The notes beneath the pieces were generated by a model. It worked only from the letters and a program-made list of their open reading frames with translations, searched no databases and had not been told where the DNA came from. The translations under genes were made by a program, and so were the position numbers. DNA of 64,000 nucleotides, taken from Paramoeba atlantica (Eukaryota > Protista > Discosea). Shown here one piece after another: positions 31,360-57,930 of the stretch. Each line of letters begins with the position of its first letter. Position 1 is the first letter of the stretch. The stretch lies in NCBI GenBank assembly GCA_977017575.1, contig CDRNVI010000078.1, positions 38,586-102,585 of the forward strand, given 5' to 3'.

Positions 31360-32262
31360 GATGGTGTTCTGATGCAAGGATCCGCAAGAAAAAACCGGCA
31401 AGCATTGGAAAGCTACGTCAGGGATCTTTCCTGATTCTACGTATGTTTGATGCTTCCGTTTTATTGCTTCTTTTGCCAGGTTCGCGCATGTCTTACTAAT
31501 GATCGACGGCGCAAGCTCGTGAATCACTGTAAGGTCGTAAAACAGTTCGCCTGTTGACCAATAAATCACGAGGTCAGGGCCTGACCTGAACAACTGCCGC
31601 CCTGAGCATGTCTTCTCATGAATTCCCCTGTTTTCCGGATTCACAGCCACTTTACATGTGGCGCACTTCCAGGAACTGAAGGCCCTAGGTTCACGTTCGC
31701 AAGGTATCCCTGACTTTTGACTTAGGTCAAAGAGGTATTTGACGAGACGATTGTGCTTCACGGTAGCGTTCTGCCCCGAACACTGAGCGCACCCTGGGAT
31801 ATGTACCAAAGCAGTCTTATTGTTCAGCAAAGTCTTACAACCTGGACATAGGATCGTTGCTGGGATTCTTGGGTGAGGAATTCCAAGTCGTGCCATAACT
31901 GGTATTTCAAAGGCATGTGAGGGAACGAAGCGGACCTCCGATTTAAGCCAATCATAATTTCCCTTTCGGGTTGTTACCCTTAAAATATTAGAATACTCCG
32001 GATCTTGTTTTAACCTCGCAACCACTTTTTCGTGAAGTACCGCTGCCGTCGTAACTTCATCCATAGGTGGCAAAGCTGAATTCTCTTCTTCTCCAGTGTA
32101 AGGGACGTTTTGGTTTGGCAACCAAGCCCGAGCAGTAAAAGATTTTATTCGCTCAAGAGCTTGGTAGCGTGATGCCAAATATGCCGCTTCACGAACCTTT
32201 GAACAAGACGTCAATCCTAGGCCTCCCTTTTTCATGGGCAGCCGGGCCATCTCCACCTCCTT
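31360..32262 (-). mobile_element. CRE-like fragment B (thumb, two CCHC knuckles, PD-D endonuclease); 3' third of a split host element
   Basis: ARLPMKKGGLGL, CPGC..H..C, KHN, GPDL..YDLTV..K. Joins fragment D across the TSD TTCCGTC. Confidence 0.9.
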
Positions 32263-32269
32263 TTCCGTC

Positions 32270-35200
32270 TTTTTTTATTCAAATATAATCCCTCCTGAAT
32301 TTCAATCCGTAAACTTTTAGTGTTTATGAAGAGTCTTTTTTTCCTCGTTTTTCCTTCCCCCCTTCTCTCGCTTCTTTGAGAGAAAACTACAACCGCACAT
32401 CTCTAACTATATATTAAAAAACGAGTGTAAGAAATCCATTCTAAAGAAATTAAAGCTAAATCTAGAAGCCATAAGTATCCTCCTCTGTACGGGGCTCCAA
32501 GAACCGACGCAACTGGCAGTTTAACACTGCCCCATTCAATTCTTGCAAATGCAGCGCAAAGTCTCGTTCCACCGCCTGCGGATTCATGGACGATTTCTCG
32601 GCCAAAATGTGTAGTAGCTCTCTTGTGTTGGCGTGAAGTGATCCGCTTGCAAGGATGGGTAAGCACCGAAAGTTGTCCTCTCTTAATATTTTGGTCGCCA
32701 CGTACTTGGTGCGTTTCCTCGTGATCGCGTCTTGGAGTGCTTTTGCTGGCTTGGTACCGAGAATGGAAGGAGCGAGCTCGTGTACGACTGTAAGGTCATA
32801 AAAGATCTCCCCTGTGGCCCAATATACTACCAAATCGGGGCCCGATCGATGCAACGCGCTGCCTTTGCACGCTGTTGCATGCTCCCTCTTTCGCTCTTCG
32901 GAAATTACTTCCGAGCACCCGAGGCACGTGTACGATGAAAACTGACGGGGCTCCCGCTCGCATGGGATACCGGCCTTCATGCAAAGGTCGTAGATGTAAC
33001 GAATCAGACAATTGTGCTTCGTAGTCGAATTCGTTCCGGTGCACCTGACGCATCCCGGCACGTGGGTGAGAGCGGTCTCGCCGTTGATTTCCGTTTTGCA
33101 GCCCGGGCAGAGAAAGGATGAAGGGAGCTCCGGGTGACAGATACCGAGCCTCGGCATCACTGCTAGGGTGTATTGTCGCGTCGGTATAAATCGTTCGGTC
33201 GCGTGCAGCCACGAGTAGCTTCCTTTCCGAGTAGTTGCCTGCATTATCTGCGCAGTTTTCTTGGTTTCACACAGACGCGTTTTTATCGCCTTGTGTACTG
33301 CTTTCTCCGCAAACTCTTCTTCCGGTACAGCGGCCACTGTTGAGGCATCGCACGTCGCGACTTGAGCTGAAAACTTTTTTTGCTGCTCTAAAGCTGCGTG
33401 TTGCGAAGCCTCATATGCGGCCACTCGGATAGAGTCCGTTGAAGACAGGCCCAAACCACCCATCGACAGCGGCAAACGAGCCCACTCGACTTGATCGGAT
33501 GTCAAAGGACCAAGCCATGCTTTCAGAACGTCTTCTACCTCTGAGTCAAATTCCTTCGCCATCTCTCCAGATGCCTCCGGCGCGTGCGTTCGAATCTGGT
33601 ATCTTTGTCTCACATTGACGCATTTCGACAGGATGAGGCACGAGACATTATTTGCTCCCATTCTCCGCAATCTTCTAAAAATTGTTTTATGCTTACGAAG
33701 ATTCCTTAAAAGAAGATTGCTGACCCGTTCATTTTCTCCGATGTATGCCCCTAGTGCTTTCAGGGCATCTGACTCAGAATTCACCCCGGCCATCTTTAGA
33801 GTCTCTGGAATTTCTCTACCTTCTCTCCCGCCAAACCACACACATTTTCTGTTAGCGAGTTGTACATCTCTCTCGCCCAAAAGGTCCCACAGTCTATAGA
33901 ACGCTTTCGTCAAAAGATCCGCGTCGTCGGACACCAGATTTATGTCATCGATATAGGCAAAAATTTTCAGCGTTGGGTATTCAAGAGCCAATGTTGCGAG
34001 CATTGGCTGCATGAAGGTGCAGAAAAGAAAGCTGGAAAGCGGCGACCCCTGCCGCACACCTCGAGAACTACTAACCGTGCCGTGTAGCGTACCATCTTTC
34101 CCGTAGAACAACAGTTCAGATGGTTTAGAATATTGCGCATGGAAGAGACGTTGGAAAGGACGAAGCGTAGCATAAGAGTACAGAGAGTCGGCGATGTGAT
34201 CGCGATACGGTGAATTGAATGCATTGCACAGATCAATCGACAGAATTTTTTCACCCTTCATGTAGCTCTCCTGAAGTTGATGCACGATGGACTCGCATCC
34301 TGATTTTTGCGATACCCCGTATTGCCAAGGAGCAAACAAAGTGCCAAGGGATCGTTCGTATTTCTGTAGCATAACCACTTCCGCTAGCTTCAGAAACATT
34401 TCCCCAACCGCGACAGGGCGAATACCTCCGTCGGCTTTCGGAATAGCAACCAGCCGCGCTCTTTTAAGTCTTGTCATCACCTCGTCCGCTACCTTCCCGT
34501 TGATCACATCCAAGAGCATGTGACATAGGGCAGAGCAACATACTTCGTCATCCAGAAGTATGCGAACGATTCCATCCGTGGTTCCAGAAGGGCCAGGAGC
34601 TGCTCCCTTAGCAAGACGTCGTCCAGCCTCTCGAAGTTCTTGTGTCGATAAAATCGCCAAAGCTGGAGCATCTGCTGGAAGGTGGAATGTGCGTTCGGAA
34701 TATGGATGAAGCGTTTTCAATTTCGCGATCGTCTCCTCGTCAGACAGCTTGCGCTCGATTACCTCCTGGTCCAACACTTTTGTGGCCTTAGATGCACATC
34801 CCTCAACGACCAACCGAATCGCTTTTTTGATCGCTCGGGCGTCCGAGGCTTCCTCATCCTCCATCGCATTCTCTGCCTTTTGGAGCTCGCGTTTCGATTT
34901 CATTGGCCTTCTGCGACGTCTACGCGTGTAGGCCTCACGAACAGCAGCTAAAGAGAACTTCATCGCCGACATCAGTCTATGCCAGATTTTGTTTCTCTGA
35001 TCGTACCCACAGTCCGCATAGTCCCTGATCAATTCCCGGTAAACCGCTATGACGCACGGGACGAATTCCGATCCTATCGATTTGACAGTGGGAATTGGCT
35101 CCAAATCCAAATCACATTCCGTGTTGGTCACGCTTGGAATTAATGGATCACTTTGATTTGTAGTGGGTGAGTCGCCAGGATTTCCTTGGGCTTCCGGTCC

Positions 35201-35960
35201 GACTTGTCCATCCATCCACACTATTCTGTATATCCTAACATTCGGTTGCGGTGGTAAGGTCCCCACGAAAGCTTCTTGTACTTGATGACCCTTAATCCCC
35301 TGATAGTCGATAGCTATTTTGCGAATGCCCGCTCTTGTTTTAACTGAATCCACCACTCCAATCGAGATATTCAACAAGGGCTGTCGATCAAAACTCCATG
35401 CAACTACGCATTCATTCCCTAGTCGAGCGTCTTTAGTCTGCTGCGCTATTCGTTCTGGGCTCAGGGGGAAGTCAACACCAATCCGCACCGTAGCGTAAAG
35501 CGCTCGAACTATCCGGGTGACCGCATTTACATTTCCTGATGTATCTGTGATTCGCAAATCTTCCTTTTCGAATCTCTGCTGCTCATGTGCTGTCGGCGGG
35601 CTATCGCAATCCAGAAATTCATTTAACACCTCATCAGGTGACATGATACCGGGTGTCAAGGGTCTAGGGGTGGCCTCTGTTACCAGAAAGGGTGGTGGAG
35701 AAGAATATTGTGGAGACATGAGTTCTGCAACGGAAATATTCGTAACCGGTAGCGGAGACGGCAACCTCTGAAATGGGGACGACGGATCTGTTGCCGTATT
35801 TTCCGTGGCTTGAGTACGATTCTGCGTGGCCGCCACCGGTCTCTGCGTGGCCGCCACCGGGCTTTGCGTAGTTCTTTCTTGTGCCTGTGGGGATACCGCT
35901 CGGGCGTAAGAAATTTGTTTCTGGCTCACGGTGTTGGGCGGCGAGTCAATGTCCCCCCCA
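32270..35960 (-). mobile_element. Near full-length CRE-like element C (ORF 32462..35929, 1155 aa) with A-tail and 7-bp TSD
   Basis: Uninterrupted ORF with RT (AYIDD), two CCHC knuckles and an RLE domain. TTCCGTC at 32263-32269 and 35961-35967. The frame is open to the 5' junction; first ATG at 35719. Confidence 0.95.
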
Positions 35961-36637
35961 TTCCGTCAATGGACCGAGCCAGTTCTTCAATACGCTCTCG
36001 ACATTGTCATCGAATTTAGTGGAGGCCTCCTTTGTCACAGACGGCGGATGGACGCGCATGACGTATTGTTGCTTAACATTGATACATTGCGAAAGAAGTA
36101 TCAATGCTACATTGCTTAATCCCATTGCTTTTAATCTCTGGAAGCTTGTATCTTGTTTATCCACTGCTTCCATTAATCTTTTCTTGATCTGATTCTCTTT
36201 GCCGATGTGTGCCCCCAATACTTTGACCGCTTCTTCCTCATTGCGCACACCCTGTACCTTCAGGCTTGGTGGGATTGGCTGAGCCGACCCCTCCCCAAAC
36301 CATATACACTTCATTGTTGCTAGCGTGAGCGAGTATTGAACCATCAACTCTTGGAGTCTCTGAAACGCTTTTTCGATTTGAGCACTTTTTAGGGAGGACA
36401 TGGTAACGTCATCGATGAAAGCGTGAAACTCCACTTCGGGAAATTCCATCGACAGTGTTTCCAGCATGGGTTGAAAAAAGGCGCAATAATACATGGAAGC
36501 CAATGGTGAACCCTGCCGCAGACCTGATGTGCTTAGGACTGTTCCGACCAATTTTCCTTCTGAACCATAATACAGCAATTCAGAGGCCCCCGAGTATTCG
36601 ACCTCGAAGAATCGCTGGAAAGGGCGGAGTGCACTGA
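35961..36637 (-). mobile_element. CRE-like fragment D (RT core); middle of the split host element
   Basis: LRPFQRFF, GLRQGSPLA, AFIDD, WLGPLTE; contiguous in protein register with G and B. Confidence 0.9.
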
Positions 36638-37277
36638 AGAAATCAACGACGAGAGTCTTCCACATACATTAAAAACAACTTGTAAGAAAACATTGTTGTA
36701 AGAGCTAAAGAAATATATCGCTGATATCCTGAATCTCATCCACTGCCTATATTTACTAGCTAAAGAATATTCGTATTATTGATGCAACTATCCGGATGTA
36801 TATAGCGCGCAAACTATTTCAAAAGCATAATATAAAAATATAATACGTAGTGAAGGGGCTTTGCCCCCTGGCACGCAGCCACCACCCTTGGGGGCTGGTG
36901 GGAGGGCATCGCACACTAATAAAAATAACTTGTAAGAGAATGTAAGCTATAAAACTATACACAATCTACATAAAGTTATAATTTAAATCATATTAAAAGA
37001 TATAATAGAATTCATAATCAGAGATTATGTGCCTCGTAGGGCCATTCGAGAAAAAGGAGTCTTTTCAAATTCGTATTTGTTCTCGTCTAAATTTCCTCTC
37101 GTAAACTATCAGAAATCAACGACGAGAGTCTTCCACATACATTAAAAACAACTTGTAAGAAAACATTGTTGTAAGAGCTAAAGAAATATATCGCTGATAT
37201 CCTGAATCTCATCCACTGCCTATATTTACTAGCTAAAGAATATTCGTATTATTGATGCAACTATCCGGATGTATATA

Positions 37278-39593
37278 TTTTTTTTTTTTTTTTTCTTGTT
37301 TCTTTTGGCTTTCCTGACGCAACCCAACTATCCAAGAACTTTCTCAAGTTTACATAAACTTTTAGTACTGATTTTTGTCTATCTCTTCGCAGACTTTATA
37401 ATTCCAATTTGTATCTTTTCTGTACTTTTGATTTCTTAAAGAATAGTGCTTTTCTGATAGTCTTGAGGCTCCAAAAAATGTCGGAGCTGTGCGTATACTT
37501 CGGATCCGTTCAGCTCTTGGAGTAGCAACTTGAATGCCTGTTCGGTTTTTTGGGTATCCAACAGGCAGACATCCGTCAGTGATTTAATTAGGCCCCGTGT
37601 GCTCTTATGTAAAGACCCGCAGGACAAGACAGGAAGGCACTCAAAAGCTTCCGCCGGAATCATGCCACTATTGACGTATGTTTCATTTTTCCGCTGTATA
37701 GCTTCTCGCACGAGTTGGGAACACTTTTTATTCCGATGGGAAGGCGCGAGCTCGTGCACCACAGTTAGGTCGTAGAACACCACGCCACTGTTCCAGTAGA
37801 TCGCAAGATCCGGGCCTGAGCGATGAAACTGCCGTCCTCCGCATGTTTTGTGGTGGAGATGCTGATTGTTGTAGTCGACTGTATTTCCGCATGTTAGACA
37901 ACTCCACGTGCTAAAAGAACGCGGCTCTCTTTCGCATGGAATACCAGCTTTCATGCAAAGATCATACAGAAACTTGGTCAACATGTTGTGCTTCGCTGTG
38001 GCGTTGAAACCTGTACATTGCACGCATCCGGGGATGTGAGTTAGTGCAGTGTTTGCATCCATCAATGTTCGGCATCCAGGGCAAGTCATAGCATCAGGAA
38101 GTCTCGGGTGATGTACTCCAAGACGGGGCATGACTGCTAGCTCGAATAAGTGCGGTGGTACATATCTTACATTGGACAGTAGCCAGTCATAACTCCCCTT
38201 ATTGGAGGTTGCTTTTAACGTCCCGGCCATTTGTGGATCGCTTACGAGTTTGTTCCATGCTTCCTCATGAAGTTTCGCTGCAGCGGTAATTTCGTCAGTA
38301 GGTGGTTTTTGACGAGCGAGTTCTTGTTCATTTGCTGTCCCAGCGTGTTCAGTGCTATGAAACTGTGACGGCACAACTCGAGCTGAAAAAGATTTTATAT
38401 GCTCAAAAGCTGCGTGTCGGGAAGCTTCATAAGCTGCCGCGCGCGTTGGGTGACATGCCGTGAGACCAAGTCCTCCTTTCTTCAGGGGTAACCTTGCTAT
38501 GTCAATTTGTCTAGTCTGCAATGGGCCCATCCATGTTTGAAGTACGCTCTCGATTTCGCTATCAAAACGTTTACATGTTTGATCCGTGGCCTTGGGGTTG
38601 TGTGTCCTCATGTAGTACTGTTGACGAACGTTCACACTTTTTGTCAAAAGGATGAGGGATACGTTACTCATGCCCATTAGCTTTAGCCTGCGGAATATTA
38701 CTTCTTGTTTGCCGATCTTTTGGAGCAGTTTTTGACTGATGGCGTCGTCTTCTCCAATAAAAGCCCCCAGTACTTTAGTGGCCTGGCTCTCGGTTTGTAC
38801 TCCTTCGGCTTGAAGAGCTTCTGGAATGGACTTGCCGAGGATGCCACCAAACCAAACACATTTATGCGCCGATAGTGCAAGATTGCTAGATGCGACAAGT
38901 GCCTTCAGCCTTTTAAAAGCGTTCGTGAGCTGATTCGGATCTTCGGATGTCAAATTGATATCGTCGATGTACGCATGTATGTTGATGCCAGGAAATTCTT
39001 CTGCAAGGGTTTCCAATACAGGTTGTAGGTATGTGCAGAAATACAGCGTGGATAGTGGCGATCCCTGTTTTACTCCTGAGGAACTTGATACTGTGTCGAC
39101 CAATTTACCTTCGCTGCCGTAGAAGAGAAGCTGAGATTGCTCGGAATATTCAGCCGCAAAAAACCTTTGGAAGGGTCGGAGCGTTGCGATACCGAAAACA
39201 TGCTTTGCGACGTCATTCCTGGAGGGGGTGTTGAACGCATTTTTCAAGTCTACGGATAGGATGGAGTGGCCTGTCAAATATTTTTCGTGAAGGGTGTGCA
39301 CTATCCTCTCGCAGCCCGCTTTTGACATTATCCCCTGCTGCATTGGCGCAAAAAGTGGCTCCAGGGTATTCTCATAGCGTTGAAAAAGAATGATTCCCGC
39401 TAACTTTCCAAAAACGTCTCCCATAGCAACCGGCCGAACGCCTCCATCTGGTTTCGGGATAGCAATCAACCTCGCTCTGTTTAGCCGCCGTAAAACTTGT
39501 CGCGAAAGAAAACCGTTCAGTAGATCGGCCATCATGTGACAAAGGCTCGTGCAGCACACTTCATCGTCCAGTAGAAGTCGTAGCACGTTGTCA
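37278..39593 (-). mobile_element. 5'-truncated CRE-like element E with poly(A), inserted into repeat B1
   Basis: ORF to stop 37436 with AYIDD, CCHC x2 and GPDL..YDLTV; T17 on the plus strand; the target lost about 2 bp relative to B2. Confidence 0.92.
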
Positions 39594-39850
39594 GCGCAAA
39601 CTATTTCAAAAGCATAATATAAAAATATAATACGTAGTGAAGGGGCTTTGCCCCCTGGCACGCAGCCACCACCCCGATCGCTCGTCTCCTCACAACATCC
39701 TGTCTCTCGTATATTAAATCGCTGCACGTTCCACATACAAAATTCCATTGCGAAGCTGGCCAAGCTGCGAACGGAAGCTTGATAAACCTACATTTGATCA
39801 TTCACTAAATACATATTTTTTTTTTTTTTTTTTTGAAAGAAGAAGCAATC

Positions 39851-39881
<31 letters not shown>

Positions 39882-39891
39882 TGTTTAATCT

Positions 39892-41481
39892 CTAAAAAAT
39901 TCTGCTTATTGGGTCCGCTGGATTTAGTTTCGTAGAAATATAATGAGCTTGAATACATATTCCTTTATTCTTTAAACTCTGTAAAATGCTTTTCAATTCT
40001 TTCGCTATGCCATCAGACTTGCATATTTTCCGATTCAACGCTGCTCGACAAGACGTATTATCAATCCAAAGCTGAACGCAAGTCCCTTGCTCGAAATATT
40101 TTTGGAATTCTTCGAGGGCGAATCGCACCGCCGCCGCTTCTGATTTGTTAACTTCGTAGGTCCATTCTGCTGGCCAAGGTGCGCCCAAAATCTTAACCTC
40201 TCCGCTATCCATGTACAGAATTGCTCCCCATCCTTTTGAGGAGGCGTCTGTAAAGAGTTTATGACGCGGAGGTGCAGTGGCGGGGTGAGGGGGTGCTCTT
40301 ATCGGCACGTTTTTAATCAAGTCGTCACGCCATTGAGCTAAGATCACACGAGTTTTCATGGGAAGATCCACGATTTTGTCCTTTGCAAAAGGATGTCGGT
40401 TCAAGTAATTAATACGTCGTTGTACTATTTTTATCGCAAAGTGATATTGCGGGATTACCACACCAAGTATCGAAGAGCAGTACAGTAGACGCCCCACCGC
40501 CGCCTCCAGCTCTAAGAAAGTGAGTCTCGAAAAAGTATCCCGTTTCAATTTGCTCACAACCTTCGGTCCCAAGCAGACCCGGCTTGATGCGTGATCAAAT
40601 TTCACTCCGTTGAACACGTATTGTTTCGTCGGAGGAACGTCCTGATCTTTAAATCGAGCTCCTGCCACTCGCGCACGCGAGTCAATAAAATAAACATACT
40701 CGTCTGCATGTTTTCTAGATCCGGAAAAACGAACTCCATCTATATAGATATCAGTAGAACCGTGTTGATACGAGTGGGATTTTGAGCAATAATCTTTATT
40801 TCCTGCCAACGCTGCTGTCATGCAATGCATAATTTCAGGCGCACATCTGTGGCCCATGGGTAAAACATTCATTTCGTATAATTGCCCATCTTCTGCACGA
40901 AACCGAAACTTTGCTCGGGATCGTAAGGGTAAGCCAACCTGGTAAAAACCACACATTAGATCACGTTTTACCCCCACCTCAGCATTTACTGCGTATAAAT
41001 AACGAGAAGGGTGTAGGAGAGGAACAGCTGGTTCGTAGTCCTTTAGGCGTAAATTGTCTGATCGTGTCCATGAAATAAAACGTCTTCTGTCTTTGCCCGC
41101 GTCGTCTTTTTCAAGGACAGTGAACGGAACCATATATTGCATGGTCGGGCGTCGTTTGGCTTCTTCGGTAGATACCTTCGATATGACTTTAGACCGAATC
41201 AATGCTGGAATGTCTCCTGGAGCCAATGCCGGTTTAATGCAAGGAGCGGACTCAGCTTTCTCGGGCAACTTGGTGAGTTCATCAAGAACGTACGTTAGCC
41301 TATCATTCTGTTGTTCCGTTAGCCACTTCCGTAATTTTTGAACATTCAACGTCGGAATATTATCCTTTGCATGCAAGGGGATATGGTAGTCGTCGGTTTT
41401 AGCTAATTTGGAACTGCGCCTTGGACATAAAATTGAATACGATTTAAGGAAAGGAACCTGTTCGTGAAACTCCTGAACCAT
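39892..41481 (-). CDS. RT-RNase H of the YR retrotransposon (ATG overlaps the YR stop as TGATG; frame is open much further upstream)
   Basis: DLMCGFYQ, LPMGHRCAP, YIDG; RNase H LFTDASSKGWGA, E, WIDN, NPADPISR. Confidence 0.9.
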   Translation of the reverse strand: MVQEFHEQVPFLKSYSILCPRRSSKLAKTDDYHIPLHAKDNIPTLNVQKLRKWLTEQQNDRLTYVLDELTKLPEKAESAPCIKPALAPGDIPALIRSKVISKVSTEEAKRRPTMQYMVPFTVLEKDDAGKDRRRFISWTRSDNLRLKDYEPAVPLLHPSRYLYAVNAEVGVKRDLMCGFYQVGLPLRSRAKFRFRAEDGQLYEMNVLPMGHRCAPEIMHCMTAALAGNKDYCSKSHSYQHGSTDIYIDGVRFSGSRKHADEYVYFIDSRARVAGARFKDQDVPPTKQYVFNGVKFDHASSRVCLGPKVVSKLKRDTFSRLTFLELEAAVGRLLYCSSILGVVIPQYHFAIKIVQRRINYLNRHPFAKDKIVDLPMKTRVILAQWRDDLIKNVPIRAPPHPATAPPRHKLFTDASSKGWGAILYMDSGEVKILGAPWPAEWTYEVNKSEAAAVRFALEEFQKYFEQGTCVQLWIDNTSCRAALNRKICKSDGIAKELKSILQSLKNKGICIQAHYISTKLNPADPISRIF

Positions 41482-42100
41482 CACATTATCGATGCACCGG
41501 GGAGAAGTACTGACACCTTCTGAGTCCCTAACGCTCTTGCCGTAGTTATTTGGTTGGCGTTGTACCGCAGTAGACTTTCTACGTTCAAGTGCTTTGAGAG
41601 ATTCATTACTTCCGATAAGTTGAGGTGGCCTTCTACTATTTCCTGAAATAGAAAGGTGATGGCTCCTCTCTTGATTGAGTGCGTGCCATATCCGTCGCCT
41701 AGGACGTCTCGAATATGGAGATCCATCTCCTGAACTGTCGCGGTGCTCATTCGTTGCCCTGGTCGCAGGCTGCTTACATACTGAGCTATTTGGTTTGTGC
41801 CCGGACCCGTGATGATCGCGTACATGTACGGTCGGTACGGATTTAGACGAGTGGTCCTCGTGAAACGTCCCCAGTAGATTATTATTTCGTTCGAATTTAC
41901 ACTCAGAAATTGCTCCCTTCTTAGCTCGGCCGTTTCGGTCCAGCGTGACGCGGCTTTCCAGCATAGCAGGACCGTCATTGCTTGTGTTATCGACAGGCGT
42001 GTGCACAATTTTTGCAACATGGGAGGTGTTATCGGTTGCATTTGACGTTGTGGTTCCGTGCCCCCCTGGGCCTGAATCGCTTTTGTGAACAACTTCAACG
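41481..42100 (-). CDS. Tyrosine recombinase, catalytic half
   Basis: ASRWTE (R), HSIKRGA (H..R), LSKH (H), LLRY (Y). Confidence 0.88.
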
Positions 42101-42325
42101 TGTTTGAATGCATTGCACCCCCTGAGAGGACAGGTATACATTGAAAGCTTTCAGCCATGATCTTCCCGGTCTTGACGTATGTGTCATGTTTTCGTCGACA
42201 GGCGTCGCGGAATAAATGTGCACACTTTGTGTCAAGGTTTGAGGGTGCCAATTCGTGGATGACTGTTAGATCGTAGTATATCTCGCCGGTTGCCCAATAT
42301 ATAACAATGTCAGGACCGGACCGAT
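42101..42325 (-). mobile_element. Short CRE RLE-domain fragment fused in frame to the YR half
   Basis: HRSGPDIVIYWATGEIYYDLTVIHELAPS...LSGGAMHSNT followed by LKLFT (YR). Confidence 0.85.
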
Positions 42326-42329
42326 GAAC

Positions 42330-42780
42330 AACAACAACAACAACAACAAATACACTGAGTCCTTTTTAGTGGACCAGTTAGGGGCTCTCGAGTAGGTACT
42401 TATAGTGTCGATACATCTCGACTTCTTCGTATGACACACTGGACTTCACAAAGCAGAAAGAATATACAAAATAGTAAAACACTTAAACTTTTCAATAAAT
42501 CCGACGTGGCGGAACGTACATCGGGTTCATCAAAATATGCTCAACCAGGATTAAATGCTCAACCAGGATCAAATGCTCAACCAGGATTAAATGCTCAACC
42601 AGGATTAAATGCTCAACCAGGATTAAATGCTCAACCAGGATCAAATGCTCAACCAGGATTAAATGCTCAACCAGGATCAAATGCTCAACCAGGATCAAAT
42701 GCTCAACCAGGATCAAATGCTCAACTAGGATCAAATGCTCAAGCCAGGATGAAAGCCTCGACCAGGAACAATGCTCAACG
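42330..42780 (+). repeat. (CAA)n + 190-bp unique block + 18-bp minisatellite (AATGCTCAACCAGGATYA, ~11 units); inverted copy at 57975-58390
   Basis: Direct sequence comparison; the array reads as AQPG(L/S)N repeats. Confidence 0.95.
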
Positions 42781-42825
42781 AGTAATAATTAAGATTCCGG
42801 AACAACAGAAATGTACACATGCAGG

Positions 42826-46746: not shown

Positions 46747-47698
46747 CTAGTGGATTGTCCGTCTTTCGCTGCGCACCATTTGGTGGGAACGCGCAGCGCC
46801 ACTCGCCACCCCCCTCTGAAAAATCTGAGTCAAAAGAGGACAGTTAGCACGTATATGACCTGGTTTACGACAATTATAGCAAACAGGGTTGGCACGGCGA
46901 GAAATACGAGTTTGCTTGAGCTGTTCCTCAAGCATCATTTTCCCAAATACGTCATTGGGGTCTTCCACTTGATGGAGGCGTTGTTGAACACGATCGACTG
47001 GCGCTCCAGCAGCTGCCCAATAGTGCGTGCGTAACTCCTCGATCAGCATGGTAGCGATAGCAACGAAATCTTCTGTCCAGGTGCCTAGCTCGCGCGCCGC
47101 ATAAATCCATTTGGTGAGGATAGTAAACAAGCGCTCTCGGATTGAAGCGAACACCTAATTGAGGAGCATCGCGCAATTCTCTGATCAATTCACGGGGCTT
47201 GAAGTCATCTTCAGAGTATATATACGATTTCCATGTCAAGGGGAAGATTACTGAAAATGCCTTGGGGTTTTCTACGCCCACTTCAGATTGGATAGGATCA
47301 CTCACCCGTTGTCCACCCGGCATACGTGCTTGAACCTTGACGAAACTGAGATCGTAATAGCTTATATCCGGGAAAGGAAACGAATATTCAATGTCAGGGT
47401 CATCGTCCCATCGCGCTTTAATCTCACTGTTCGGATCTTTTGGATTCTTAAAGTAGACACGACCTGTAACCGTGTATCGATCCTGGTCCCCTCGCTCCGA
47501 CCACACTGCTTGAACGAAGACGCGATAACCTCGTGAGAGTAGTAAATTGGTTTTATCTGCAAATTCTCGCAAAGCTTCTTCGGACAACGGAACGGCATGG
47601 CCACCGCCTTGCAGAATCGCCTCAACCTGGCCAGGGTTGAGTGTCTGCTGGTGATCACTCGGCGCGGCCGGATCAGGACTGATCGCTCTGGCCGTCAT
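46747..47698 (-). CDS. Gag-like ORF of the YR element (ATG at the end of repeat A1; one frameshift near 47150)
   Basis: CYNCRKPGHIRANC CCHC knuckle; the two overlapping ORFs 46952..47698 and 46747..47154 read as one protein. Confidence 0.75.
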
Positions 47699-47901
47699 CG
47701 CACACTAATAAAAATAACTTGTAAGAGAATGTAAGCTATAAAACTATACACAATCTACATAAAGTTATAATTTAAATCATATTAAAAGATATAATAGAAT
47801 TCATAATCAGAGATTATGTGCCTCGTAGGGCCATTCGAGAAAAAGGAGTCTTTTCAAATTCGTATTTGTTCTCGTCTAAATTTCCTCTCGTAAACTATCA
47901 G

Positions 47902-48900
47902 GCTAAAACGTGCTTTGCTATATCCATTCTGCTCGGCGAGTTAAAGGCATTTTTAACGTCTACGGATAGAATGGAATATCCATTGCTGTGGCGATTCCGA
48001 AGTTGGTGCACTATTTTCTCACATCCCTCTTTTGAGAAAACGCCCTGTTGCATGGGTGCAAATAACGGAGCCAGCGTATGCTCATACCTTTGCATTAGGA
48101 CTATGCCGGCCAATTTATTGAGCACCTCACCCATTGCGACTGGGCGAACCCCTCCACAACTTTTGGGAATGGCAACCAGCCTAGAGCGGTTGATGCGACG
48201 AATCACGTCCTTGCCCAGGAAACCGTTGATGAGATCACATATCATGTGACACAAATTGATGCAGCAAAGTTCATCATCAAGCAGCAGCCGTACAATGCTA
48301 TCCGTCATCCCTGTTGGACCCGGATTGGCCCCTTTCGCCAGGCGCTTTCCAGCAGCACGGAGTTCTTCCATTTCAATCCCAGACATTATTGGCGCGTCTG
48401 CTGGGATTCTGAAGTCGCATTCTTTTTGAGGATGCAATTCTGACAACTTGTCCAAGGTTTCCTCATCCGGAAGATTACTTGGCGTGAAGGCTTGATCTAA
48501 TACTCTGGCTGCTTTTGACGCGCACCCTTCAGTAACCAACCGCGTTGCTCTTTTGATAGCTCTCCGGTCATTCAAGGCGGCCTGATCTTCCTTGTCATCG
48601 TTATTTTTAAGATATGGTCTTTGTCTCCTACTCCTCCCACTGGCGCGGCGTACTCCTGCAAGCGACAGCTTCATCGCCGACAGCAGTCGATGCCAAATAA
48701 TATTCCTCTGCTGGTGATCGGCATTGATGTAATCCTTTACAATTTCACGAAAAGTTGCGATGACGCATGGAATAAGGTCAGGACTGATATTCCGAACGGT
48801 GGGTATTGGTAAGAGATCAACTCCCTCCCCATGTACGTCGTCTGGGGTCAGTGTGATCAGATGATTCTCGATAGTTGTTGGCTCGATCTCCTTGTTGGCT
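47902..48900 (-). mobile_element. CRE-like fragment G (RT N-terminal part); 5' third of the split host element
   Basis: DLLPIPT, WHRLLSAMK, GANPGPTG, RPVAMGE, DVKNAFN; ends KHVLA and continues FSALR in fragment D. Confidence 0.9.
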
Positions 48901-48924
48901 TTTTTTTCATATTCTTACCTCCCG

Positions 48925-50340
48925 TCATGGGCATGTTGACTCGCAGCAGGGCGAAGGACACTGGAGTAGCTCCAGAGATCCTACCGCTGCCGCCGTCCCG
49001 ACGAGGGAACAAGAAACCGCTTGAAGCGGTGCTGCCGCCGCCAGCGCCCACATCACAACAGTCGCCCCCGCCGCAGCAGCGATCGCCATCTTCGCGACAA
49101 AAACAGAAGCCCCCTGAGGCGCTTCCGCCACAGACGCCGCCACAGAGAAAACCGTCTCCGCCGCCCGAGGCGACGCCATCTCCACTCGCTGCGCCTCACG
49201 CCGCGCCTTCTCCCGTCGCGCCGCCTTCTCCCCACCCCGCCGCGCCACTCGTCCCTACCGCCGCGCGGCCTTCACCGTCCTCAACTCCACCCCCTCCGCC
49301 TTCACCCTCTACACCCCAACCGCGGAAGACACTCCGTTCCCCTCCCCCTTCGGGAGATATGCCCCCTCCGTTACCCCCTCCCTCGACATCTCCGTTGCCC
49401 CCGCCTTGCCCCCAAGCTTCGTCCCCAGGCCAGCAAATTCTACCGAAGCCACTCTCGCCTCCGAATTGCCCATTTCCACGCAATTTCATCCAAGATCACT
49501 CCGGTACCCCGAACCGCGAGGAATCGATTAAGGCCAGCACGACGAACAGGAACGAATGCAGCATCACAATCAAACGCACCAACCTGTCACTCAACTATTT
49601 CAAACGTCGCGGTAAACTCAACTTAGTCGCCAGTCCCAAAAAGCAGAACAGCCCCATCATCCGACAATTTGAAGGCAGTGCAAACATGAAGAAGAACAGC
49701 GCGAAAACAACCGCATTCGCTGATCACGGCACTGAGTCAAATTACGCCGACGCTGCCCCAGCGCCGACGCCGACCTATCTATTAACTTATGTCGACGCTG
49801 CCACACCTCCGCCAAAAGATCCTACAACTCTAGATGAAACGAAGCGGCAAGAACACTACAAACGCGCAAAGCAAGGTTCGCTTTCTCCCGAAACTCACCC
49901 TGCCGAAACTCACTCCACTGATGAACGCTCGACCGGAAATTCCGCTTCAAAATCGTGTTTGCAAACCTCAAACGCGATGCGCACAACGACCGCCCAAACG
50001 AATGGAGAAACGCTCAAAAACGGTGAGGCAATAAGAAATCTACCCAAGAAAACCTCCTTCTATGACACCCTCGCGGCTCATTTTCCTTCACGCTTTCCAG
50101 CACGCCTTACAAGACGACAGATCCGAATTTCTTCATCTCCGGAGGCCTCACAATCAAATCCGCAAATGGGAAATGAGAAATCTGGACCTGCTGACAACAG
50201 TGGTATCGATCGCCTCGAGACATCGGCAAACACAGATTCAGCTAACTCACCGGAAACAGGCTCATCACAAGCAAATCAATCGCCGCAGGCAATATCGTCA
50301 CACGTAAATCAAGAAACTGGAAAATCTGAACTTGTTGACA
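48925..50340 (+). mobile_element. Pro-rich N-terminal region of a CRE-like ORF
   Basis: RAKDTGVAPEILPLPP matches KAKEAGVAPVILPLPP at 53713, which leads into the CRE N-terminal domain. Confidence 0.6.
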
Positions 50341-52224
50341 TCATTGAAGTCGATATTGGAAGGCATCGTTTCTAGCACTGCCGGGGTACGCCAAGGTTCA
50401 CCATTGGCTACTCTATATTTCTGCGCATTCTTGCAGCCGATATTGGAAACGCTGTCAATGGAGTTCCCGACCATTGAAATCTCTGCGTTCATCGATGACA
50501 TAACGCTCGTATCAACGGATCCAGACCAATTAGAAAAAGCCTTTATACGACTGCAAGCTTTAATGTCGGAACGTCAATTGAACTTCTCACTGCAAAAGTG
50601 CGTATGGTTTGGAGGACAAACACGACATGCGATTCCCGCCAAACTAGCATCGCTCGGTCTTGCAGAGGAGACAACTGTTACGAAGATCCTAGGTGCTTAT
50701 GTTGGAGAAGATGAAACCATTAGTGAAGAATTACTCAAAACGTTGCAAAAACACGATGACATCTTCCGACGGCTTAAGAAAATGGGCCTCAGCAACGTCT
50801 CACTTAATATACTGACGCGTTGTGTTAATGTACGACAGCAGTATCTGATGAGAGTTCAACACCCAAGTACCACAGATGCTCTCACATCGCAGTTTGACAA
50901 AGAAATTGAAGGGGTTTTGACACATTGGTTAGGACCTTTACAGAATCAACAGGTTGAAATCGCGCGATTGCCAGTTAAGAAAGGAGGGCTAGGATTAACC
51001 GCCACGCATCCACTACGAGAAGCCGCACACACTTCTTCAAAGTATGCAGCTCAAGAGCGCCAAAATTCCTTTTCTGCTCGAGCTCACACAATGAAGAAGA
51101 CTACGACACAAGCCGAACATCTCATACACGAAGGAAAAATGACGGTACTACGACCTCCCGAAGACGATATAACAGAAACTGTTAAGCTGCAAAATAAAAC
51201 TTGGGAAAAACTCATGCACGAACCAAAGCTTGCCGCCATTCTCAAAGTTACCTCATACAAAGGCAATAACGACTGGCTCATGTCAAACACCAGACTCGTA
51301 CCTCCACGGAACTTTGAACTTACGATCATGCCGCGACTTGGAATTGTCCATCCCAAATTACCTCGAAACCTCACCTGCCCCGGGTGCAAGATTATATTAG
51401 ACGGCAACACGGCCCTCACCCACATCCCTGGATGTGTCCGATGCTCCGGCCTCAACGCAACCGTAAAACACAACGCTCTTGTCAAGTACATTGGTGACCT
51501 ATGTATTCGGGCTGGAATTCCATGTGAGATCGAACCTCGGGCCTTCACCACGTGGACGTGTCAAGCATGCAACGCAAATGTTAACTACGAGAACCAGGTC
51601 ATTCATCAAAGAACATGTGCTGGACGAACTTTCCATCGATCAGGACCTGATCTCTTGATTTACTGGGCCAGCGGGGAAATTTTCTACGACCTTACCGTTG
51701 TCCATGACCTTTCTCCGTCGCACATCAACTCTAATTGCTCGAAACTAATGAAGGAAGCCACAGAACGAAAACATGGACATTATGTCGCAAGCGGACTAAT
51801 TTCATCAGGAGCATTTCAGTGCCTACCAGTTTTATCCAGCGGAGGACTGAGCACAACAACAAGAAATCTCCTCTACGCTTTGGCCGACGCAACAGTGCAA
51901 AATAGAAAAACCGTCGAGGCCGACTTTAAACTTCTATTACAGGACCTCAACGGAGCTGCTGTATACTCGCAACTCCGCAAATACTTAGCGTCGAATGGAA
52001 CAGAAAATTATGGTTTTTGAGTCAAACAGATTAATACTTTAGTAAAATTATATATTTAATACATAAGCTTACAAAGACGCGTAAGCTTCAACAAAAAAAA
52101 TCAACAAACCAGAAAACTTAAATTATCTATTTATCTATTTATTTGTAAGTCCTGTTCTAGTTATTTTTGGAGGTAGTTTCTCTCACGAGAGAAGGGGGGA
52201 AGGTGATTTTTCGCCCGTGGCTTC
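50340..52224 (+). mobile_element. CRE-like element F (RT C-terminal half to 3' end; ORF stop 52020)
   Basis: GVRQGSPLA, AFIDD, CCHC x2, GPDL..YDLTV; 3' UTR with hairpin+G6 motif. Confidence 0.92.
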
Positions 52225-52290
52225 AACGTCGGAATATTATCCTTTGCATGCAAGGGGATATGGTAGTCGTCGGTTTTAGCTAATTTGGAA
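52222..52290 (-). mobile_element. ~70-bp fragment of the YR element RT region
   Basis: Matches about 41346-41412 (TTCAACGTCGGAATATT...AATTTGGAAC). Confidence 0.85.
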
Positions 52291-52294
52291 CAAA

Positions 52295-53730: not shown

Positions 53731-53749
53731 ATTACTATCAAATGTGAGA

Positions 53750-55950
53750 CATGTTCACCTTCCCCCCTTCTCTCAATTTTCAAAGAGAAACTATCCCGAA
53801 AATGAAATCTATATATTTTTATAAGCTGACTCAGCTTATAGTGATATTGTGTTTAGAACTTATATACTATATTCTTGAGTTTGCGTGCAGCCGTCTAAGT
53901 ATTTCTTTAGCTGCGCATAAATCCCTAATCCATTAAGCTCCTGAATCGTCAGCTTCATTTCGAGTTCGACCTGTTTCCTGTTTAGCATGGCCGCGTCTGC
54001 TAGCGAGTGTACCAAGTTCTGCGTATTGCGGTGCAAAGCGCCTCCTGCCAGTACGGGTAAACATTGAAATGAGTCTTCACGAATTAAGTTCGTACGTACA
54101 TATGTGTTGGACTTTCGCTGCAGCGCGTCATTCATGAGCTGTGTGCATTTCTTTCCACGATTAGACATTGAGAGTTCGTGAATAACTGTCAGATCATAGA
54201 AGACCGCACCCGTGTTCCAATAGATCACGAGATCGGGGCCAGACCGACAAAGTTTTTTTCCTGCACAAGTCTTCTGATGTACCAACTGGTTTTCCGGACT
54301 GATTGTGGATCGGCAAGCGATGCACTTCCACGTAGAAAAGTTTCTAGGTTCCGTTTCACATGGGATGCCTGCTTTCACGCATAGACGATGTAAAAATCCG
54401 ACAAGTGAGTTATGTTTCACGGTCGTATTTATACCTGAACATTGAGCACAGCCTGGGATATGGGTGAGGGCGTTTCGGTTATTGAGGAGAATACCGCACC
54501 CTGGACACAATAGACTGGTAGGTAGATCTGGGTGTTGGGCATTTAGTCGTGGCATAATCGCGAGTTTGAAGAGATGGGAAGGGATGTACTTCGCGTTGGA
54601 AAGGATCCAGTCGCTGTTTCCTTTGAAGGATGTGGCTTGTAGAATGGGCTTAATGTCGGGATCCGTTTGCAACTCTTTCAATACTTCGACATGATGAATG
54701 CTGGTGGAAGTTTTTTTGTCCACTGGTATGACTTTCATTGTCGAGTTCTTAGGAATAGACGGGTGTGATGGCACCGCGTTGTCGATCCGAGCTGAAAAAG
54801 AGTTTCGGCGCTCAAGAACCGAGTAGCGGGATGCCACATATGCCGTCTCCCTAAGGGGACTGCTCGCTGTCAAACCCATTCCTCCCTTCTTAACGGGTAA
54901 TCGTACAATTTTCATTTGATCAGGAGAGAGTGGACCAATCCAAGTCTCTACCACATTTTCAACCTCTTGATCGAATTGTGATGATGCTTTCTCTGTTGTT
55001 TCGGGCGGGTGAACACGAATCAGGTATTGTTGACGAACATTGGCACATTTTGCTAAAAGAATCATCGATATATTATTGATGCCCATTCGTTTTAGCCGCC
55101 GAAAAGCTGTGACCTGCTTCTCTAGTTGACGCAAAAGTCGTTCACTTATTGTGTTGTTTTCTCCAATATACGCTCCGAGTACTTTGACCGCTTCGTCCTC
55201 CGACTTTACACCTTGGGTGCTCAGCGAATTCGGTATGGAATTTCCGGATTTTCCTCTGAACCAAACGCATTTTGCCTCGGCTAGTTTCACCTGTTTTTCT
55301 TCTAGGAGACCTTTGAGCCTAAAGAATGCTTTCTCCAGTTCGGTTGAATCTCGAGACACTAACGTTATATCGTCAATGTATGCATTTATTTCAATACCTG
55401 GAAATTCGGAGGCCAGTGTCTCGAGTATTGGTTGACAGAATACGCAAAAGTAAAGACTAGCCAGAGCGGACCCTTGCCGTACACCTGCTGAGCTCATTAT
55501 AATGTCCGTCAGGCTGCCATCGGAGCCATAAAATAAAAGTTCGGAAGCATTTGAATATTCGGCCGCAAAGAACCTTTGAAAGGGTTTCAGTGTAGCGAAA
55601 GCAAAAACGCACTTTGCAATTTCCTCTCGTGAGGGTGAGTTGAATGCATTTTGCATATCCACAGTCAGGATTGAGTGTCCGTCAAGCCAGCGGTCCCGCA
55701 ACTTGTGTACGATTCGTTCGCACCCCGCTTGAGAGAATACGCCTTGTTGCATTGGTGCAAAGAGGGGTTCTAGTGACTTTTCGTATCTTTGCAGCAGAAT
55801 TATTCCAGCTAATTTGCTAAATATTTCTCCAATAGCTACTGGGCGTACTCCCCCGTTGGGCTTGTCGATGGCTACGAGTCTTGCCCGATTTAGACGCTGT
55901 AGAACTTGTCTAGATAGGAATCCGTTGATCAGATCGCTCATCATGTGGCA
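53750..55950 (-). mobile_element. 5'-truncated CRE-like element H (ORF 53860..55944)
   Basis: RPVAIGE, DMQNAFN, AYIDD, CCHC x2, RLE; 3' UTR hairpin+G6 motif. Confidence 0.93.
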
Positions 55951-56127
55951 AAGGCTATTGCAACATGGCTATTGCAAATTTTGGCGCGCGTGAACACGCC
56001 CATTAAGAAAAGAAAAAGTAGAAAAAAGGAATGCAACAACTCTTTGTGCGCGCGCTGGTTAGCCACGGCTCTGTTTTCTAAATCCGTCATTTCTTGGAGG
56101 CGTTTCTCCTGTGAAATCCTATGACAG

Positions 56128-56690
56128 GAAGCCACGGGCGAAACATCACCTTCCCCCCTTCTCTCGTGAGAGAAACTACCTCCAAAAATAACTAGAACAG
56201 AACTTACAAGTAAATGAATAAATAAATAGATAAATAAATACGCTAACCTGGAAATGTCTATAAGTATTTCGTATTGGCGCTACCCCCCATTGTATGGGGG
56301 TAGTTCTAACTAAGCTTAATAATAATAATAATAATAACAAAAGACTATACACATGCAACTTTCAACGTACACTCTCCTTAGCGCACTGAAACATCTATCC
56401 ACATCACGAATAGGCCAAACCGCGGATTATGCGAATGGAGGTAGGAGACCTATTATCTAACTAAGCTTACGCGTCTTTGTAAGCTAAATCTTATAATTCT
56501 ATATATTTAATATTTGACCTACGATAGTGCTTTGCTCATTTGAGAACACAGCACAGTGCCGTTTAACTCCTGGAGGTGCATTATGAAATCTTGCACCACG
56601 ATATCGCGATCACGCCCGCTAGCATCGGCCAGAGATTTCAGGAGAGCCAGGCCACTTTTGTTCATTGCTCCTCCGGCGAGTTTTGTTCAT
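56128..56690 (-). mobile_element. Very short 5'-truncated CRE-like copy I (last ~55 codons + 3' UTR)
   Basis: Manual translation LAGGAMNKSGLALLKSLADASG...LQELNGTVLCSQMSKALS*; the UTR shares the AGCTTACAAAGACGCGTAAGCT hairpin and 3' end with F. Confidence 0.8.
56318..56455 (-). mobile_element. 138-bp SINE-like insert with (TTA)n tail and 13-bp TSD; second copy at about 56748-56891
   Basis: TCTAACTAAGCTT at 56305-56317 and 56456-56468. Confidence 0.75.
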
Positions 56691-57124
56691 TGCTCCCACG
56701 GCCTCCGTCACTTCTATAGATGCGCTTTCCTCACCAACCTTGCACACTTAATAATAATAATAATATAACAAAAGACTATACACATGCAACTTTCAACGTA
56801 CACTCTCCTTAGCGCACTGAAACATCTATCCACACGAATTTATCACGAATAGGCCAAACCGCGGATTATGCGAATGGAGGTAGGAGACCTATCCTCTTTT
56901 GCAATTAGGAGAAAACGTGTACAAACGAGCACAAGCAAACCAGAACAATCTTACAATTAGCCATTTTCAGCTCAATATTTCACCATCGATATTCAACGCG
57001 GTACCAAGGGTTAAGCAGTACGCAAGTTCTTGCCTTCATTGCCGCGTCATATGCCCGAAGAGCAACTCAGCGCCAACTTGTTCTCTGCTTGCCAAATAAA
57101 CCACCGTATACTATCAATATTACG

Positions 57125-57263
57125 ATTAAACAAAAAGGGGGTAGTAAACAAAAAGGGGGTAGTAAACAAAAAGGGGGTAGTAAACAAAAAGGGGGTAGTA
57201 AACAAAAAGGGGGTAGTAAACAAAAAGGGGGTAGTAAACAAAAAGGGGGTAGTAAACAAAAAA
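57125..57263 (+). repeat. 18-bp minisatellite TAAACAAAAAGGGGGTAG, ~7.5 units
   Basis: Direct reading; perfect units. Confidence 0.95.
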
Positions 57264-57299
57264 AAGCATATCAAGCACTACTACTTTCAAGCCTTCAAC

Positions 57300-57930
57300 A
57301 TTAGAAGGACGCACGATCTGTTTGCTGCAACTCGCAGCCTTTGACTACTCACCTTCACACTTCTTTCCAACTTCCCTAATACTGCCGCTCTGCACGTCTT
57401 CTTGGAGAGCCTCCATTTTTATCCTCTCAGTCTTAAAAAGCGTAAGGAGAAATTGAACCTGGTGGATCGACAGCCCGAGCTGAAACGGAGTTTTGGGCGC
57501 TCTAGAGTTATCGCTCCATCTGGGAACATTTTTCACACGCACGCAATAGACGTTTATCGTAGCAGGGGGCTTCAAGAGCTTCGGTTGCGTGAGGGAGGGA
57601 TGCAGAGACATTTGATGAATCTCAGCAGGGCCCGAGCTGAAAAAGATTTTTGGCGCTCTAGAGATCCACTGATTCCTCATCCGTACAACTGAACCCTTCG
57701 ATTCCTGTGTGAACAAGCTTGCCCGGCACTTTCGAAGAATACCAGCAAAACCCGAGCTGAAAAAGATTTTTGGCGCTCGAGAGTTCCACCGCTTTTGCTT
57801 CAGTGTTCCTGGACCCCTTGTTCCTTTAAGCGAAGCGCGTTTCGACAATTCATGCAACAGGTGCAGAGAAGACATGAACCTCACCCTCCCAACTTCTCGC
57901 TTGGGGCAATGCCGTCCCGGACACATGGTC
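57300..57930 (-). mobile_element. Putative non-autonomous CRE derivative with three GAGC-N17/18-GCTC motifs
   Basis: Motifs at 57477, 57634 and 57754; the LERQKSFSAR frame is broken by TGA codons. Confidence 0.45.

Follow-up and report, generated by a model that had tools for sequence, protein, structure and literature searches.

A short sequence motif, GAGC and GCTC separated by 17 nucleotides (nt), recurs in a 64,000-nt stretch of contig CDRNVI010000078.1 from the Paramoeba atlantica assembly GCA_977017575.1 (positions 38,586 to 102,585, hereafter the window), and it proves to be the invariant top of a bulged RNA hairpin of about 45 nt that is under selection on the sense transcript of CRE-like retrotransposons of the type without long terminal repeats (non-LTR). 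Five divergent copies of these elements in the window (B, C, E, F and H) carry the hairpin inside their open reading frames (ORFs), and it has been captured and multiplied, to two to four copies each, by non-autonomous elements that resemble retroposed mRNAs. Close protein relatives come from a single ENA metagenome assembly only, ERZ24900291, from which 12 contig stretches (L001-L010, L030 and L031) were taken for comparison; all hairpin-bearing sequences are from one assembly and probably from one organism. Coordinates are collected in Table 1.

The pair GAGC/GCTC stands 17 nt apart (N17) at 32130, 33364, 38380, 51055, 54789, 57634 and 57754 of the window, and 18 nt apart (N18) at 30277, 30487 and 57477. 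These ten occurrences compare with 1.51 expected, and none of 100 shuffles reaches ten. A preliminary description of the window had placed the motif at the same ten positions (five ORFs, a pair near 30 kb and a trio near 57 kb), all of which are confirmed; its N18 spacing for the 30-kb pair holds as well, and the copy at 57477, which it had not marked as N18, is N18 too. Over the window and the related loci together (215 kb), the counts of the pair are 41 at N17, 10 at N18 and 8 at N20, against one to three at each of the spacings 15, 16 and 19. The strand has to be taken from the ORFs because the ends of the motif are palindromic; the motif-bearing ORFs of B, C, E and H lie on the minus strand and that of F on the plus strand. 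Read in the sense direction, GAG-C...GCT-C encodes E(R/Q/H)-x5-A(R/Q), and the peptides over the motif are LERIKSFTAR in B, LEQQKKFSAQ in C, FEHIKSFSAR in E, QERQNSFSAR in F and LERRNSFSAR in H. As had been described, GAG and GCT are 17 nt apart in all five copies, but the leading residue, given earlier as Leu or Gln, is Phe in copy E. The hairpin overlaps the codons at the junction of the RT (reverse transcriptase) thumb (...GGLGL...AAY.AS...) with a hypervariable linker, ahead of the CCHC/endonuclease domain.

Codon choice at the motif, which the preliminary description had named among its tests, departs strongly from background usage. Copies of the element were gathered by protein homology (tblastn with a 250-amino-acid piece of copy C), the motif not being used as a criterion, and the 26 copies fall into 20 lineages with pairwise nucleotide identities of 29-70% (median 50%). 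For Ala, GCT is used by 18 of 18 lineages (background 26%, p=2e-11), and for Glu, GAG by 17 of 19 (background 40%, p=9.5e-6); these are the two strongest biases among 64 conserved columns, the third column reaching p=0.0016. The codons after Glu and after Ala start with C in 20 of 20 lineages, the residues themselves varying (R/Q/H and R/Q/P, respectively), and Arg in these positions is encoded by CGN in all 21 cases and never by AGR (p=0.001). The five residues between Glu and Ala are free between families, as is seen in ERPINNSA, EHLKPNNA, EQLITPKA and ERLSSSSA. Both lineages with GAA for Glu, and no others, have GTT where the rest have GCT, so that a synonymous change at Glu is matched by an Ala-to-Val replacement and the motif becomes GAAC...GTTC, a G-C pair giving way to A-U; in the tree these two lineages do not group as sisters. 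At the hairpin codons both the RNA and the protein are under selection.

The structure was examined by folding 39 instances with 14-nt flanks, nearly all of which share one architecture, the upper stem being present in 37 of the 39 minimum-free-energy (MFE) folds, mostly with the same bulge. From its base, the hairpin consists of an 8-bp lower stem, a bulge of two unpaired bases that precede GAGC on the 5' side, the 4-bp stem GAGC:GCUC and a 17-nt loop that is first A-rich and then U-rich; on the 3' side the lower stem runs straight on from GCUC. The true structure is thereby larger than the fold first suggested, of which the GAGC/GCUC stem stands, while the inner A-U stem shows no covariation and is not supported: 61% of cells pair between the A-run and the U-run, against 57% in shuffles and 67% with the partners slid by one column (+1). 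The two runs are better described as conserved loop sequence, and the loop is at least as conserved in the non-coding copies (gCc.AAAatCctTTTCt) as in the coding ones.

From an alignment of 35 gapless instances (22 coding and 13 non-coding), RNAalifold returns exactly the 12-pair hairpin. In this alignment 90.7% of the cells pair, compared with 26-40% when the partners are slid by one to three columns, and compensatory changes occur in 9 of the 12 pairs. The lower stem, which has no conserved sequence and had no role in the selection of sequences, reads UCUA/UAGA in the ORFs of family 2 and GUUUG/CAAAC in family-2-like non-coding copies, UGUUUC/GAAACA in one and CGUUUC/GAAACG in the other of two adjacent non-coding copies, and, in copy F, AGCUC/GAGCU. 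Of the 420 paired cells, 53 are G·U, and at columns 11-41 U·G is more frequent than any other pair (20 of 35); given these frequent G·U pairs, the helix belongs to the sense strand and is therefore most simply one of RNA. Synonymous constraint, covariation, G·U pairs and the single orientation of the copies together support the earlier proposal of a cis-acting nucleic-acid element that overlaps the coding sequence, and of the two forms it had allowed they favour RNA over DNA.

A covariance model built from this alignment finds 47 matches in the source loci, all of them known and all sense; wherever the direction can be read, from the ORF or from a resolved poly(A) tail, the matches are in the sense orientation. 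One and the same 53-nt model thus matches the CRE genes and the short elements. Run on L030 and L031 (45 kb), which had no part in building it, the model gave nine matches with E<0.02, five of which are new coding lineages: two with GAGC/GCUC, one with GAAC/GUUC, the third case of this double change, and two wobble variants. The first variant, GAGC/GCUU, has Ala followed by Trp and its outer pair becomes G·U; the second, GGGC/GCUC, has Glu replaced by Gly and an A-U pair becomes G·U. P0011 has Leu after Ala with the codon CUA, whose initial C is the base that the hairpin needs there. Among the upper stems of the 25 coding lineages, GAAC/GUUC is seen three times, and GAGC/GCUU, GGGC/GCUC and the only pair-breaking variant (AAGC) once each. 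Base pairing appears to dictate the changes of Ala to Val and of Glu to Gly, which makes this a clean example of overlapping protein and RNA constraint. Against Rfam 15, the window has no match at the gathering score, and two hairpin arrays have none at E<=1. Three features that were noticed by eye, namely a hammerhead-like core, an Sm site and, in the loop, a trans-splice acceptor (a polypyrimidine run followed by AG), occur in some copies only and were discarded, none being conserved across families.

The ends of the elements are informative about the host. A 36-nt sequence, CTTTAACGATAAAGATACAGTTTCTGTACCTTGTTG, is seen at least 12 times in the related loci, straight after poly(A) runs and straight before the 5' untranslated regions (UTRs) of various transposons. 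Its core, ACAGTTTCTGTAC, is the conserved core of kinetoplastid and diplonemid spliced leaders, and the host is therefore a euglenozoan. From the succession of poly(A) run, leader and transposon 5' UTR it follows that the retroelements were copied from mRNAs that were mature, trans-spliced and polyadenylated, a mode of copying that this locus shows in a euglenozoan. New copies are often inserted in older poly(A) tails, and many keep merely the last 6-8 nt of the leader. Dinoflagellate retrogenes with spliced-leader relics at their 5' ends are reverse-transcribed mature trans-spliced mRNAs (PMC5585692, PMC12014239); they resemble the present copies in being DNA that begins with a whole or partial leader, whereas here the relics mark retrotransposons and non-autonomous parasites in a host of the euglenozoan type.

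The non-coding hairpins are carried by elements of this same mRNA-like kind. The two near 30 kb lie in NA-2, whose 5' end, CTTGTTG, is the last 7 nt of the spliced leader and whose interior contains a 210-bp repeat in two units with one N18 hairpin top each (30483-30518 and 30273-30308). An A13 run follows, then about 90 nt of CRE RT coding sequence (motif VDLRNAFNNVSRP, 29949-30035, minus strand), then the target-site duplication (TSD), an order that suggests a chimeric retrocopy produced by a template switch during reverse transcription. The trio near 57 kb occupies a stretch of some 700 bp with approximate borders (57263-57960) between two 18-mer arrays, and its loops are closest to that of copy H, with 2 differences in 17 positions. 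The carrier elements measure about 640-810 bp and have a spliced-leader relic, poly(A) and a TSD where their ends are resolved. A 480-nt profile of CRE coding sequence matches all the non-coding elements only at the hairpin and 10-25 nt on either side, as the preliminary description had said of their unrelated flanks; the 30-kb and 57-kb copies are not decayed duplications of coding sequence, given this restricted match and, for NA-2, the TSD and the empty site. Non-coding loops differ at one or two of 17 positions from the loop of a specific CRE copy (F or H), and the family-2-like hairpins keep the features of the family-2 loop. The capture and multiplication by non-autonomous elements that had been suspected is borne out by hairpin arrays with leader relics and poly(A) at several loci. 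At all resolved ends, CRE copies and short elements share no 3' tail beyond poly(A); the distance between hairpin and poly(A) is about 1 kb in CRE copies and, in short elements with a resolved tail, about 100-600 nt.

Further features of the short elements were recorded. In the MFE fold of the 810-nt element, nt 7-43 pair with nt 744-791, a panhandle that sets the leader end beside the poly(A) end. Array elements (30144-30692 and 57345-57926 in the window; L009 1458-1946; L030 17458-17853) contain long open frames on both strands, of 141-194 amino acids in sense and 115-198 in antisense against a shuffle mean of about 74, with stop triplets depleted on both strands, and two array hairpins of L009 are still readable as LERRxxFSAR. 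The idea that the short elements code for protein was considered and is not supported, because the long frames are found on both strands and the repeats of NA-2 differ mostly by amino-acid-changing substitutions. An 18-mer array of the ATGCTCAACCAGGATCAA type, together with about 200 bp next to it, occurs at 42330-42788 (plus) and 57984-58389 (minus), in opposite orientation and at 98% identity. Shortly beyond the 57-kb hairpins there is a different, perfect 18-mer array (TAAACAAAAAGGGGGTAG, 7.6 copies, 57127-57262), and in L006 a unit similar to it comes after the 810-bp element.

What the hairpin is for can be approached from the ends of these RNAs. Since all host mRNAs would be alike at their ends, with a trans-spliced leader and poly(A), and element copies carry exactly those ends, the element's protein would need an internal mark that singles out its own RNA for target-primed reverse transcription, a role that would fall to the hairpin. 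The short retroposons would have kept or captured only the hairpin module and multiplied it to two to four copies, and loops that resemble those of particular CRE families would let the arrays compete for the enzyme in trans. We incline to the view that the hairpin is a cis-acting recognition or loading signal for the RT of the element and that non-autonomous retroposons have hijacked it; the ligand would then be the RT or its ribonucleoprotein, and binding would promote retrotransposition. With rather more reserve, we suggest that two novelties may be present, namely a self-recognition hairpin that is internal and embedded in the ORF, and trans-spliced, polyadenylated "hairpin-array" parasites, similar to short interspersed elements (SINEs), which have from the partner nothing but two to four copies of the signal and whose loops track their partners. 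The proposal bears on the long-standing question of how poly(A)-tailed non-LTR retrotransposons choose their RNA (cis-preference) and how parasites get round this choice. The candidate signal is compact, at about 45 nt, and its design rules are clear (a 4-bp stem that does not vary, a bulge of 2 nt, a lower stem free in sequence and a conserved loop), and the natural loop variants matched between autonomous and non-autonomous partners make the question directly testable.

Several observations weigh against an RT-binding hairpin. Both hairpins of NA-2, which have 18-nt loops and a degenerate lower stem, do not fold as the hairpin; they match the model partially (26.3 bits, positions 9-43) and may be decaying. 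The stability of single hairpins is modest (z from -0.35 to -4.5), and thermodynamic stability is weak as sole evidence. Both-side changes are found in 93 cells against 30.5 in shuffles (0 of 500 reach this), a statistic that is inflated by kinship among sequences of a single assembly, so that the slid-partner controls are the fairer comparison. The invariance of the upper stem in the non-coding set reflects ascertainment, GAGC/GCUC being the search criterion there. The hairpin model has no match in 67 kb from 19 distant-relative loci of other metagenomes, and at the homologous site the nearest relative, L011 (28% amino-acid identity), reads LRSLQHHAAR and lacks a comparable fold; such RTs therefore do not have the hairpin in general, and it is specific to this element lineage. 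Finally, the ligand could be a host RNA-binding protein instead of the RT.

This last possibility is the main rival, although we regard it as rather unlikely: the hairpin would be a post-transcriptional control element (acting in stability, translation pausing, export or localisation) that is read by a host RNA-binding protein and raises the level of short-element RNA. The evidence for structure and selection is silent on the ligand, genes of the kinetoplastid type are regulated mainly at the post-transcriptional level, and the hairpin lies between two protein domains, where a translational pause could aid folding. On the other side, the hairpin is found, within about 260 kb, only in CRE-like ORFs and hairpin-array retroposons and in no host gene or other transposon family; the way in which non-coding loops track particular CRE families fits a co-evolving, element-encoded partner better, and its multiplication to two to four copies suggests that the mobile elements compete for a factor in limited supply. 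A further alternative, which we consider improbable, accepts the hairpin as the recognition site of the CRE protein, as it must, and sees the arrays as decoys or silencing triggers that titrate this protein or feed a small-RNA pathway and so restrain CRE activity; the short elements would in that case be selfish competitors, or suppressors favoured by the host, and not efficiently transposing parasites. The several binding modules per element would suit such a function, but TSDs, poly(A), spliced-leader relics and the occurrence at several loci with 98% identity are signs of elements that were mobilised and not merely expressed, and 12-bp stems are too short for typical Dicer substrates.

We give very little credence to the motif as DNA, that is, as half-sites for a dimeric protein (an endonuclease target mark, a promoter or a chromatin element) placed 21 bp centre to centre, or two helical turns. 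The fixed spacing and the perfectly palindromic ends are what such sites would have, trypanosomatid CRE-clade elements are site-specific (PMC12278014), and the insertion point of copy C is 109 bp upstream of a hairpin. A DNA-binding site, however, does not require a lower stem that covaries without sequence conservation; the frequent G·U pairs would read as A·C mismatches on the opposite strand, single upper-stem changes (GCUU, GGGC) fit wobble pairing, double changes restore pairing and not recognition symmetry, and the interior of the motif always has one orientation relative to transcription. The hairpin as an insertion target was also tried and rejected, the insertion sites of C (in D/B), NA-2 and the 810-bp element having no common sequence or fixed offset from a hairpin. 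That only the peptide L-E-R-x-K-x-F-S-A-R is conserved, with chance codon usage and with non-coding copies that are duplicated, decaying coding fragments, is contradicted: Glu and Ala are indeed conserved, the K/N and F codons give the A- and U-runs automatically and the 30-kb copies are a tandem duplication, but the bias falls on exactly two codons, GAGC and GCTC stay while the residues between and after them vary, the flanking codons covary as base pairs, and the non-coding copies match the coding profile over the hairpin only and sit in mobile elements with ends of their own.

The assignment of the elements as CRE-like, of the R2 type, is made from sequence features: an RT, a C-terminal CCHC with a restriction-like endonuclease motif, and a poly(A) tail. 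By sequence, the closest solved relatives are R2 proteins (9nl3, 9dou, 9nl2 and 8gh6; RT domain E=1e-16), and the PD...D-x-T-V block aligns weakly to the R2 endonuclease; the motifs CPGC...H...C and RSGPDL...YDLTV...K are present in all CRE-like copies. A full-length element comprises a leader relic, a short 5' UTR, the ORF, a 3' UTR of 70-190 nt and poly(A). Two word-based protein searches returned only unnamed proteins, nearly all from ERZ24900291, and recovered no named CRE-clade protein. With the CRE clade (SLACS, CZAR, CRE1 and CRE2; PMC12278014) the elements share the long ORF, the RT, the C-terminal CCHC and restriction-like endonuclease motif and the poly(A), together with a host of the euglenozoan spliced-leader type and the co-occurrence of RT-RNase H (INGI-like) and tyrosine-recombinase (VIPER/DIRS-like) elements, and the same transposon repertoire of CRE, INGI-like and VIPER/DIRS-like elements has been described for kinetoplastids (PMC12278014). 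Unlike the site-specific members of the clade, the resolved insertions here are in other elements, by poly(A) tails or beside unrelated sequence and have no common target. Among copies with resolved sites none is inserted in a spliced-leader RNA gene, the leaders preceding transposon 5' UTRs and not the intron of a leader gene. A conserved RNA hairpin in SLACS, CZAR, CRE1 or CRE2 is not mentioned in PMC12278014, and no paper describing the hairpin was found in the literature.

Comparable signals are known from other systems. In stringent pairs of long interspersed elements (LINEs) and SINEs, such as eel UnaL2 and UnaSINE1, the LINE reverse transcriptase recognises a stem-loop shared in the 3' tail. 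There, as here, autonomous and short elements have one small stem-loop and little else in common, and the loop is conserved too; in contrast, the present hairpin is internal and embedded in the ORF of the autonomous element, is repeated two to four times in the short ones, whose 3' ends are merely poly(A), and these short elements resemble trans-spliced transcripts of the RNA polymerase II type, not polymerase III transcripts. The R2 protein binds folded regions of the R2 RNA, among them a 5' segment overlapping the ORF. The R2 RNA elements, however, are larger folds at the 3' UTR and the 5' end of an rDNA-specific element without poly(A) dependence, whereas here a single small hairpin lies between thumb-coding and linker-coding regions. 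The epsilon signal of hepadnaviruses and DIVa of group II introns are RT-binding hairpins that overlap coding sequence. They are similar in being bulged stem-loops in or over a coding region, where the present hairpin is likewise proposed to load its own RT onto the RNA; they differ in replication mechanism and show no sequence or detailed structural similarity to it, and no priming role is implied here.

Table 1. Positions of CRE-like copies, hairpins, hairpin carriers and spliced-leader sequences; positions refer to the window unless a related locus (L number) is named
Feature	Position	Strand	Remarks
Hairpin of copy B	32116..32168	-	53 nt, 49.8 bits; MFE -21.4 kcal/mol, z -4.5; lower stem, 2-nt bulge, GAGC:GCUC
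Copy B	ORF 31357-32256	-	3' piece of an L007-like CRE
Hairpin of copy C	33350..33402	-	43.4 bits
Copy C	element 32270-35960, ORF 32462-35929 (1155 aa)	-	Pfam RVT_1 and weak C2HC zinc finger (zf-C2HC_3)
Hairpin of copy E	38366..38418	-	47.6 bits; MFE -16.1 kcal/mol, z -3.2; canonical architecture
Copy E	ORF 37436-39763	-	
Hairpin of copy F	51041..51093	+	43.9 bits
Copy F	ORFs 48831-50375, 50332-52020	+	starts with spliced-leader relic CCTTGTTG at 48890; ATG 48927; short A-run ~52093
Hairpin of copy H	54775..54827	-	52.6 bits
Copy H	ORF 53860-55944	-	
L007-like CRE copy in three pieces	5' piece 47900..48875; D 35961-36639; B 31363-32269	-	
Spliced-leader relic CTGTACCTTGTTG	31328..31340	-	5' end of another CRE-like copy (ORF 30769-31296) beyond the broken end of B
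Spliced-leader relics in the window	31328-31340; 48890-48897; 30718-30724	-; +; -	
Spliced-leader sequence CTTTAACGATAAAGATACAGTTTCTGTACCTTGTTG in related loci	L002 7470-7518; L002 15071-15119; L003 ~1802; L004 12463-12511; L010 15160-15210	- (L003)	
NA-2, non-autonomous insertion	29941..30729	-	789 bp; TSD CCTTTCG; empty site at L007 9517-9625 and in L010
57-kb trio of non-coding hairpins	57740-57792; 57620-57672; 57463-57516	-	47.6, 45.2 and 31.5 bits; the last with N18 loop
810-bp four-hairpin element	L006 12953-13770; L004 348-1158		different flanks, 98.4% identity; starts TTGTTG, ends A15 and short TSD
L009 element	L009		~640 nt; complete spliced leader, three hairpins, A-run
Further element	L004 and L030		family-2-like hairpins and a rearranged piece of CRE coding sequence

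The window is neither human nor bacterial. Its left third is filled by intron-less eukaryotic genes on one strand, encoding Fcf1, Kri1, an ankyrin protein, a RabGAP-TBC protein of 1724 amino acids and a protein kinase, and from about 28 kb on it consists of a nest of retroelements, with CRE-like non-LTR elements, RT-RNase H non-LTR elements and one DIRS/VIPER-like element. The three pieces of the L007-like CRE copy correspond in blastn to L007 10589-11564, 11563-12241 and 12235-13141, all at more than 99.7% identity; this copy is interrupted by an 11.2-kb nested block (copy E, RT-RNase H elements and, at 39892-42251, the DIRS/VIPER-like element) and also by copy C, which is inserted in the CRE ORF of the D/B copy with the TSD ACGGAA. 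Repeats of exactly 100% identity at 36638-37277 suggest that a small E-type copy with an internal deletion stands in tandem with E. L001 (contig ctg3826l, identical protein) has element C twice in tandem, at 1679-2428 and 4603-5352, and the window has it once (33005-33754); the window is therefore from a different haplotype, locus or assembly version.

The protein-kinase gene (22066-23337, minus strand) forms an island of 64% G+C, far above the rest of the window, in which long open frames overlap on both strands. Between the host genes and the transposon nest stands a 2.1-kb array of the degenerate 12-mer GGGGTGTCTAGG (24994-27105, about 163 copies, readable as a 26-mer too) with a strong GC skew of 0.37-0.43. 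The end of the window (63096-64000) consists of at least 91 copies of the 10-mer AGAAAGAGGA, with 98% matches, and is purine-only on the given strand.

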